Assembly: GCA_020891255.1 (NCBI GenBank)
Contig: BQFW01000008.1
Coordinates: 1,488,001-1,552,000, forward strand
Origin: Entomortierella parvispora E1425
Lineage: Eukaryota > Fungi > Mortierellomycota
Length of the DNA: 64,000 nucleotides
Reading direction: 5' to 3'
The notes under the pieces are model-generated. The model made no database searches and was not told the origin of the DNA. It was given only the letters and a program-made list of their open reading frames with translations. Positions 55,848-58,218 of the stretch are shown in pieces. The position numbers and the translations under genes were made by a program. The stretch's first letter is position 1. Every line of letters starts with the position of its first letter.

Positions 55848-56093
55848 CTTCGAGACACGAGGGGCAAAGAGGGTTCAAGATAACATGTTCTGAAATCTAG
55901 AGCAAAGGCTTTGGTCGAGTGGTGTTGTGTGGTGCAATAAAAGGCGCTACCCGTCTCCTTCTTTTCACTCTTTTCTTCTTCTTCAACTACACCCGCACCC
56001 GCACTCTCTCTCACCAACTCATCAAAAGCTGACCAGCTCGCTGCCCTAGGCACCCTCAACTCCACTCTCTTCTGCACCCCGGTACACCTTTCC

Positions 56094-56406
56094 ATGTACT
56101 CCCACTCGCAAGAAAAGAACTCTGCCGATTACATCTCTGACCAAGGTAAGCTTGCCGTCTCTTCTCCCCCTGCACTTCCTCTCTGATGGGTTCTTGGTTG
56201 TCTTTGTAGACCTGGCTTCTCGTTCGAACCAATGTGAAATTGGATGAATGGCGTTCACTAACCTGATCTTCCTCCCTTTTCCTCTCTTTCTTCTATTGCT
56301 GTCCTGTTTGTCGCTTCTCCCTGCCTTTCAATTGCAATCATGAATCCTTCAATTGTTGCCAAAAACGATAACAGTCTGGAAGAACGCCAATCCAAACAGC
56401 CTCTAA
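56094..56406 (+). CDS. Arginine attenuator peptide uORF (27 aa), spliced: exon 56094-56145, intron 56146-56374, exon 56375-56406
   Basis: Spliced translation is MYSHSQEKNSADYISDQVWKNANPNSL; D12, Y13, S15, D16 and W19 align with Neurospora AAP DYLSDHLW. Donor is AAG/GTAAG, branch CACTAAC near 56256-56262, and the first downstream AG is at 56373-56374. It lies upstream of CPA1. Confidence 0.88.
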
Positions 56407-56826
56407 AGCATACACACCGCAACTACCACCACATCACCCGCTACTTCTCCAACTCCTCCTTTGCTAAATCTCCGTTTGAAGCTCGTCCCCGCGACCTTCA
56501 CCTCGTCTCTCCTCTCTTTCTCAACACCCTTCCTTTTTTAAACACTTTTTTTTCTCTTTGATAAGAGTCGCCCTATTTTCCTCACCCCGTTCTATCCTCT
56601 CGCACTCTTGCTTGCTGCTTTCCACCAGTTCTTCCACGACAGCCGTCCGAAGTAATCGAAAGAAACCCAACCGAAAAAAAGATATTATCCATCAGCTTTT
56701 TAGCAGTCACCTACCCCACACCGCCACGCGATTCGATCATCTCTCCATCGTCCGATCCAGTCAGAAAGGATATATCCAAATCAAATCAAGCAAAACTATT
56801 CAACAAAAAAACAACTAGCAAACACC

Positions 56827-58218
56827 ATGTCCCTCCTCCGCCCTGCCCTCATCTCGCGTGCTATGGCCGTCAAGTCCTTGACTCGCCCCACTGCCCGCCT
56901 TGCCTACACGCACGTCCGAGCCCTGGCCACCGTCGCTGATACTGTCTTCCCTGCCAACAAGGCTGCCCCCAAGCCTGCGCACTCTGCTCCTTACCAGTTC
57001 GATGCCTCGGCCCCTAAGGCCACGCCTGCTGCCTTGAAGCTCAAGTCTGGACACGTCTTCACCGGAACCTCCTTTGGAGCCCAGAACTCTTCCTTTGGCG
57101 AGGCTGTGTTCACAACCTCCTTGGTCGGTTATCCCGAGTCCATGACTGATCCTTCGTACCGCGGTCAGATCTTGGTCTTTACCCAGCCCCTGATTGGAAA
57201 CTATGGAGTCCCTTCTCAGGAAAAGGATCAATTTGGATTGCTCAAGTACTTCGAGTCCAACAAGATCCAGTGCCAGGGAATCGTTGTCAACGACTACGCG
57301 ACAAAGTACTCTCACTGGACTGCCGTCGAATCCTTGGGAGAGTGGTGCGCTCGTGAGGGCATTCCCGCCATTTCAGGAGTCGACACCCGTGCCATCGTCC
57401 ACCTGCTTCGTGACCAAGGATCGACTCTTGCAAAGCTGGAAGTCGGCGAGGAAGTTCTGGAGAACAAGGAGGTCGTGGAATTCCCCAACCCCAACGAGCG
57501 CAACTTGGTCTCAGAGGCTAGCACCAAGGAAATCTATGAGCTGAACCCCATGGGCGACGTCAAAATTGCCTTGATCGACTGCGGTGTCAAGGAGAACATC
57601 TTGCGCTGCTTAGTCGCTCGTGGAGCCGCTGTCACTGTCTTCCCCTGGAACCACGACTTCAACAAGGACATGGATCAGTTTGACGGCCTTTTCATTTCCA
57701 ACGGACCTGGAGACCCACGCGCCGCCATGCCCACTGTCAACAACTTGGCCACTGCCTTCAAGAACCCCAACCCCAAGCCCATCTTTGGCATCTGCATGGG
57801 CAACCAGCTGATGGGCATGGCCGCGGGATTGGGCGTGTACAAGCTTCAGTTCGGAAACCGAGGACACAATCAGCCTGCAATCAACATGCAGAATGGACGC
57901 TGCAGCATCACCTCCCAGAACCATGGCTACGCTCTCGAGGATTCAGTCCTGACTCCCGGAAAAGGCTTGAACGGCTGGGAAAAGTACTTTGTGAACGCCA
58001 ACGATGGCTCGAACGAAGGCATCCGTCACCTCACCAAGCCCTTCTCCTCGGTTCAGTTCCATCCCGAGGCCAAGGGAGGTCCCCAGGATACGGAGTACCT
58101 CTTTGACGATTTCTTGAACCTCGCTCGTGCTGAGAAGGTCAAGATGTCGTCCAAGCCCTTCTACACCACCGAGTCTTTGATCAAGGAGGTTCCCAAGCCA
58201 GTGGAGGTTGTGGCCTAG
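56827..58218 (+). CDS. CPA1: Arginine-specific carbamoyl-phosphate synthase small (glutaminase) subunit, with mitochondrial presequence
   Basis: [36 protein letters not shown], nucleophile GICMGNQ, SQNHGYA and SVQFHPE. The N-terminus is Arg/Ser/Ala-rich, as in Neurospora arg-2. Confidence 0.96.

Follow-up and report, generated by a model that had tools for sequence, protein, structure and literature searches.

The arginine attenuator peptide uORF of Entomortierella parvispora CPA1 and its intron with a probable distant branch point

The 5' leader of the CPA1 gene of Entomortierella parvispora E1425 contains an upstream open reading frame (uORF, 56094-56406) which, judged from its sequence, is the arginine attenuator peptide (AAP), and this uORF is split by a phase-1 intron. 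The intron is probably a constitutive AAP-uORF intron of the Mortierellaceae in which the distance from branch site to acceptor has here increased to about 110 nt, and in which a proximal TAG would be a cryptic site. All coordinates refer to the window, that is, the whole 64-kb stretch of DNA that was analyzed.

The CPA1 gene and its split leader peptide

The intronless ORF at 56827-58218 displays 81-89% identity to full-length Mortierellaceae proteins, the top match being the one from Mortierella alpina (89%), and its full-length matches bear the Pfam domains PF00988 and PF00117. By these similarities it is the Mortierellaceae CPA1/arg-2 small subunit. The uORF is found in its 5' leader, with an ATG (56094) located about 730 nt before the CPA1 start. 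The parts of the locus are as follows:

56094-56145, + strand: exon 1 of the AAP uORF, encoding residues M1-Q17 and including the initial base of codon 18
56146-56374, + strand: phase-1 uORF intron, 229 nt, GTAAGC...CAG, with the donor starting at 56146
56375-56406, + strand: exon 2 of the AAP uORF, encoding the rest of V18 and W19 to L27, with the stop codon TAA at 56404-06
56827-58218, + strand: CPA1/arg-2-type carbamoyl-phosphate synthase small subunit, 463 aa, intronless ORF

The 17 codons of exon 1, counted from the ATG at 56094, encode MYSHSQEKNSADYISDQ and are followed by the donor GTAAGC at 56146, while exon 2, which follows the CAG at 56372-74, reads V-W-K-N-A-N-P-N-S-L-stop. The first 24 residues of the resulting peptide are identical to those encoded at loci L003 and L005. 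The 27-residue peptide of the spliced contigs L016 and L002, both from relatives, scores 21.1 bits to the Pfam family PF08252 Leader_CPA1 (cut-off 18.5), and the match covers residues 10-23, that is, it runs across the exon junction. The distal-type junction thus makes an AAP, and this junction alone gives a peptide that matches Leader_CPA1.

Ten relatives were available for comparison, nine of them genomic loci reached via the CPA1 protein and one a metagenome contig reached via a 22-nt exon-1 pattern. The uORF and an intron at the identical phase-1 position are present in all ten (..GACCAAG/GTA...YAG/TCTGGAAG). In alignment A1 the DNA of exon 1 is near-invariant among these relatives, while beyond GTA and YAG the intron bodies are unalignable between species.

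The transcript data are from RNA of relatives and include four soil metatranscriptome runs from three studies, each containing 5-7% of the sampled words; the contigs are about 87-96% alike to the window on the uORF exons, and their assembly hides rare isoforms. Contigs of three runs have a GT..AG joint equivalent to 56145/56375 that skips 229 nt, and the contig of the fourth run has a loose end, TCTGGAAGAAC, at 56145. The contig depth is zero over 56224-56304. The junction of exon 1 to TCTGGAAG is found in all spliced contigs, namely those of the four metatranscriptome runs together with L002 and L016. Contig L002, of the M. alpina type, matches the M. alpina genome locus L001 at 99.5% and lacks precisely the 96-nt intron that was predicted there, and the JGI contig L016 is spliced in the same way. 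Comparison of L002 with L001 further indicates that the uORF intron is the sole intron in the M. alpina 5' leader. Contigs L011-L015, which were fetched with proteins P0018, P0004, and P0008, begin downstream of the uORF and are uninformative.

The DNA of the uORF (56094-56145 and 56375-56397) is much more conserved than the peptide demands. At positions where the amino acid is the same, 92% of the uORF codons are identical in nine taxa (the window and loci L001, L003-L008, and L010), as compared to 54% for the CPA1 ORF at these loci. The conserved uORF codons include some that are rare in the CPA1 gene of the window: CAA (2/17), AAT (2/29), and CCA (2/31). For the CAA preceding the donor the conservation can be explained by splice-site context, but this is not so for AAT-CCA at codons 23-24. 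A spacer of about 420 nt (56407-56826) separates the stop codon of the uORF from the start codon of CPA1; in transcripts of relatives this spacer is swapped for unrelated sequence of similar length (joint 56488 to 56614, with 148 letters between).

Anatomy of the intron and position of the probable branch site

Upstream of the used acceptor, the following elements can be recognized in the intron:

56256-56262, + strand: putative branch site CACTAAC, with A56261 as the branch A, which precedes the A of the final AG by 112 nt
56263-56267, + strand: CTGAT overlapping the branch motif, 107 nt from the AG
56263-56325, + strand: pyrimidine-rich tract directly behind the branch motif, by base composition
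56210-56372, + strand: AG-free zone, 163 nt
56326-56371, + strand: pyrimidine-poor, window-specific intron tail with two copies of TTCAATTG (56327-34 and 56348-55); a gap in every relative
56372-56374, + strand: used acceptor CAG, the sole AG restoring the conserved ...DQVWKNANP reading; the joint is seen in contigs of relatives

A first-pass annotation of this DNA had placed the best branch site at CACTAAC, about 112 nt from the AG, and had described the stretch between them as free of AG. The position of the motif and the lack of AG both hold when the coordinates are read directly in the sequence, where there is no AG in 56210-56372. The values for the relatives and for the window compare as follows:

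Intron length: relatives 85-199 nt; window 229 nt
Distance from strong branch motif to AG: relatives 25-61 nt; window 112 nt (107 nt for the overlapping CTGAT)
AG-free zone: relatives 33-113 nt; window 163 nt
Pyrimidines in the last 20 nt of the intron: relatives 75-90%; window 45%

All ten relatives have a strong branch motif of the ACTAAC, ACTGAC, ACTAAT, TTAAC, CTAAT, or ACTCAC type. In the window, TCACTAAC is retained and the last 107 nt before the AG contain no other yUnAy. CACTAAC and the bases on either side of it have been preserved in an intron that has otherwise diverged. The distant branch point suggested in the earlier annotation is therefore supported by the comparison, as the relatives keep an ACTRAC-type motif 25-61 nt out and the window intron has no yUnAy closer than 107 nt to its acceptor. 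On these measures the window intron is the extreme case of its family, with the longest intron, the farthest branch motif, and the longest AG-free zone. Its extra length is largely made up by the tail at 56326-56371.

The AG-free gap of 163 nt ranks 7th in length among those on the + strand of the window, and 0.28% of mononucleotide shuffles with identical base content reach a zone of this length. Taken by itself, the 110-nt spacer between branch site and AG is unremarkable, being AG-free in 9% of composition-matched shuffles. Among the 31 ACTRAC motifs in the window the next AG is found within 48 nt in 29, and the CACTAAC at 56256 has the second longest distance with its 112 nt; these distances give a rank only, since controls are similar and real branch sites cannot be told from chance motifs by this measure. 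A small set of 15 introns, inferred in the window by a rough ORF-joining heuristic, has lengths of 80-298 nt (median 97 nt), and its branch-to-AG distances have a median of 26 nt. A stricter first version of this set, with 12 candidates of which several were doubtful, was dropped.

A distant branch at the retained CACTAAC is a reasonable reading of these data, and the best one. U2 would then recognize the retained consensus (A56261), which is immediately followed by the pyrimidine tract, and the second step would take the first downstream AG; as the spacer is free of AG, this is the one at 56373-74. Splicing to 56375 would restore codons V18-W19 and a functional 27-residue AAP. Which adenosine branches and how the long distance is bridged are both inferred.

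Two further proposals bear on this. According to one of them there is no distant branch point at all; the branch is formed at a non-consensus site in the tail, for instance at the second TTCAAT (A56351/52), and CACTAAC is a relic. Such a branch would be 21-22 nt from the AG, which is near the usual distance (median 26 in the window set and 25-61 in relatives), and the TTCAAT motif is duplicated in the tail. TTCAAT, however, does not conform to yUnAy or to the ACTRAC consensus that all relatives have retained, and the tail lacks a pyrimidine tract (45%). That the last 110 nt are AG-free is only mildly unusual (the 9% of shuffles given above) and is in keeping with a branch in the tail, but the AG-free state of 56210-56262 would be left unexplained (0.28% for the whole zone). 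CACTAAC itself and the bases next to it are intact. Branching in the tail is therefore considered unlikely.

The other proposal is a refinement of the distant-branch reading, where a predicted helix closes a 125-nt loop and offsets the long linear distance between branch site and AG:

56240-56256, + strand: intron arm of the predicted helix, complementary over 6+8 nt with a 3-nt bulge, ending at the first base of CACTAAC
56382-56395, + strand: exon arm of the predicted helix, pairing with intron 56240-56256

In this arrangement the base of the helix would be separated by 5 nt from the branch A and by 8 nt from the 3' AG, a geometry that might bring the two together, although the helix could equally impede the access of U2 or U5. 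It is present in both the MFE and the centroid structure of two different folding windows, but the folding z is modest in the local window (-1.85) and the effect is absent in the larger one (+0.70). Its RNAduplex value is reached by 2/500 shuffles, and its local-alignment score by 24/1000 dinucleotide shuffles and 8/558 genomic segments; the helix was found post hoc, however, and the significance is only about 2% (p about 0.004-0.024 against shuffles). Yeast introns with distant branch sites depend on structure (PMC3239191), which speaks for a role of this kind, while the sequence of the exon arm is dictated by the peptide in any case, and the helix is found in no relative and thus allows no covariation test. 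Bridging by this modeled helix may be entertained as a tentative addition, somewhat doubtful in itself. No significant stem-loop was found in the spacer, where folding of 56250-56385 gives a z of -1.22 and 21/200 shuffles fold as well, and no significant structure was found for the intron as a whole.

Some other features of the intron should be mentioned. TTCAATTG contains the palindrome CAATTG, and similar copies are present upstream of the branch motifs in the AAP introns of Mortierella sp. AD031 (L004) and Gamsiella (L009; two copies). The motif ATGGC(G/C) precedes the branch motif by 3-26 nt in the window (56248) and in three relatives (L004, L008, and L017) whose introns are otherwise unalignable; the ORFs opened by this intronic ATG are not conserved. 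If the GT at 56234 (GTGAAA) were used as a donor, a 24-nt in-frame piece (56210-56233) would be left, inserting DLASRSNQ and changing V18 to F. This is an arithmetic reading of the letters, and the piece is supported by no contig. When 55900-56900 was scanned against Rfam, the sole match was a sub-threshold snoRNA outside the intron (20 bits vs. 50), and a scan of the intron by eye for C/D boxes revealed no terminal stem.

The proximal TAG

The same annotation had pointed to a second possible acceptor in the first part of the intron, preceded by a branch-like motif:

56181-56187, + strand: branch-like CTCTGAT needed by the proximal acceptor; not conserved; the sole decoy combination in the intron
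56207-56209, + strand: proximal TAG, a putative cryptic acceptor upstream of the main branch motif; gives a 64-nt intron if used

These elements are present as described, CTCTGAT at 56181-87 and TAG at 56207-09, with 22 nt from the branch A of CTGAT to the AG and 65% pyrimidine in the preceding 20 nt. Joining 56145 to 56210 gives ...ISDQ followed by DLASRSNQCEIG-stop (stop codon at 56245-47), a product that lacks W19, as had been claimed, and its frame agrees with that of the listed ORF 56152-56247. The additional upstream ATGs of such an isoform are found at 56232, 56244, 56248, and 56340, and the ORF starting at 56340 has 73 codons. Three of these four positions had been given correctly, while the ATG placed at about 56231 is actually at 56232. 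Since the proximal TAG is upstream of the putative main branch site, it can compete only by way of its own CTGAT.

It had been suggested that the choice between the proximal TAG and the distal CAG is regulated, for instance by arginine, so that a uORF without W19 together with extra uORFs tunes the translation of CPA1 or its nonsense-mediated decay (NMD). If true, part of the CPA1 mRNA pool in this one species would have a uORF without W19 along with extra uORFs, and the AAP-based arginine control would gain a further level at splicing, enabled by a weak and distant main acceptor. The site does have a plausible branch motif and a U-rich tract, and by eye the TAG looks better than the GAG/AAG decoys of three relatives. 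Human exons with distant branch points are, moreover, alternatively spliced above average (PMC1431707). Nevertheless, the AG at 56209 is absent in 10/10 relatives, in an intron body that is unalignable, even though the uORF itself is extremely constrained; the decoys of the relatives end in GAG/AAG or imply an impossible 22-nt intron. The 64-nt intron would also be shorter than every intron inferred in the window (minimum 80 nt) or in the orthologous set. All spliced contigs from RNA of relatives carry the 56375-type joint and none has the 56145/56210 joint, a weak negative as these are data in contig form. As far as these data extend, they agree with the two observations that the annotation had named as refuting a switch, namely a 56375 junction only and an AG at 56209 that is not conserved. 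The proximal reading does lose W19 and gain upstream ATGs, but its product would fall outside the AAP family and would be followed by further uORFs, including the one of 73 codons. An isoform without the AAP core and with several added uORFs would thus be unproductive rather than arginine-blind. No description of alternative splicing of an AAP uORF was found in the literature searched.

A regulatory switch at this position therefore appears very improbable. We read the proximal TAG as a species-specific cryptic site, which may at most be a source of unproductive noise transcripts and is not likely to be an evolved switch, and the site is presumably little used in E. parvispora.

Relation to known systems

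The AAP is the textbook example of a eukaryotic nascent peptide that senses a metabolite. Hood, Spevak and Sachs reportedly surveyed AAP uORFs and their introns across fungi in 2007. As in Neurospora crassa arg-2 and Saccharomyces cerevisiae CPA1, the uORF described here is situated in the leader of the CPA1/arg-2 orthologue, and the core D12-Y-I-S-D...W19 is in the same register. It differs from these two in having 27 codons and in being split inside codon 18, such that the stalling core is present only after splicing. Residue D12 of the AAP has been shown to be essential for Arg-dependent stalling (PMC7038982), and the CPA1/arg-2 orthologues are NMD targets through the uORF (PMC7049704). Alternative splicing coupled to NMD is known to alter uORF content; the hypothetical proximal isoform would similarly add uORFs and would likely be repressed or degraded. 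Unlike in those cases, however, the isoform is not seen in the contigs of relatives and its splice site is not conserved.

In human introns, an extended zone devoid of AG is the mark of a distant branch point (Gooding et al., 2006; PMC1431707). The window intron resembles the human exons with such AG-exclusion zones in having a branch consensus far upstream with an adjacent pyrimidine tract and an AG-free spacer to the acceptor, and the last AG before the zone is likewise located upstream of the branch site. It differs in that it is fungal, has a strong yeast-like motif, is a single case, and displays no alternative splicing in the contigs of relatives. Spacers of more than about 55 nt require an internal stem-loop in S. 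cerevisiae, as for COF1 and UBC13 (Gahura et al., 2011; PMC3239191). The branch to 3' splice site distance in the window is, as in these two introns, far above about 55 nt, and the predicted helix could shorten it in effect. In contrast to COF1 and UBC13, the spacer contains no significant stem-loop, the candidate helix pairs pre-branch sequence with the downstream exon, and there are no silent AGs that need to be masked.

By its sequence features the locus is an AAP uORF combined with a probable distant-branch-point intron, both of which are known kinds. On present evidence no new regulatory layer is added to the control of CPA1, and the reading of the intron as a switch is unsupported. The window intron, with its approximately 110 nt from the probable branch site to the acceptor, would be a convenient natural substrate for studying the recognition of a distant 3' splice site in a fungus other than yeast. 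In the Mortierellaceae the sensing core of the AAP exists only after splicing, and the accuracy of splicing is thus a precondition for arginine control.
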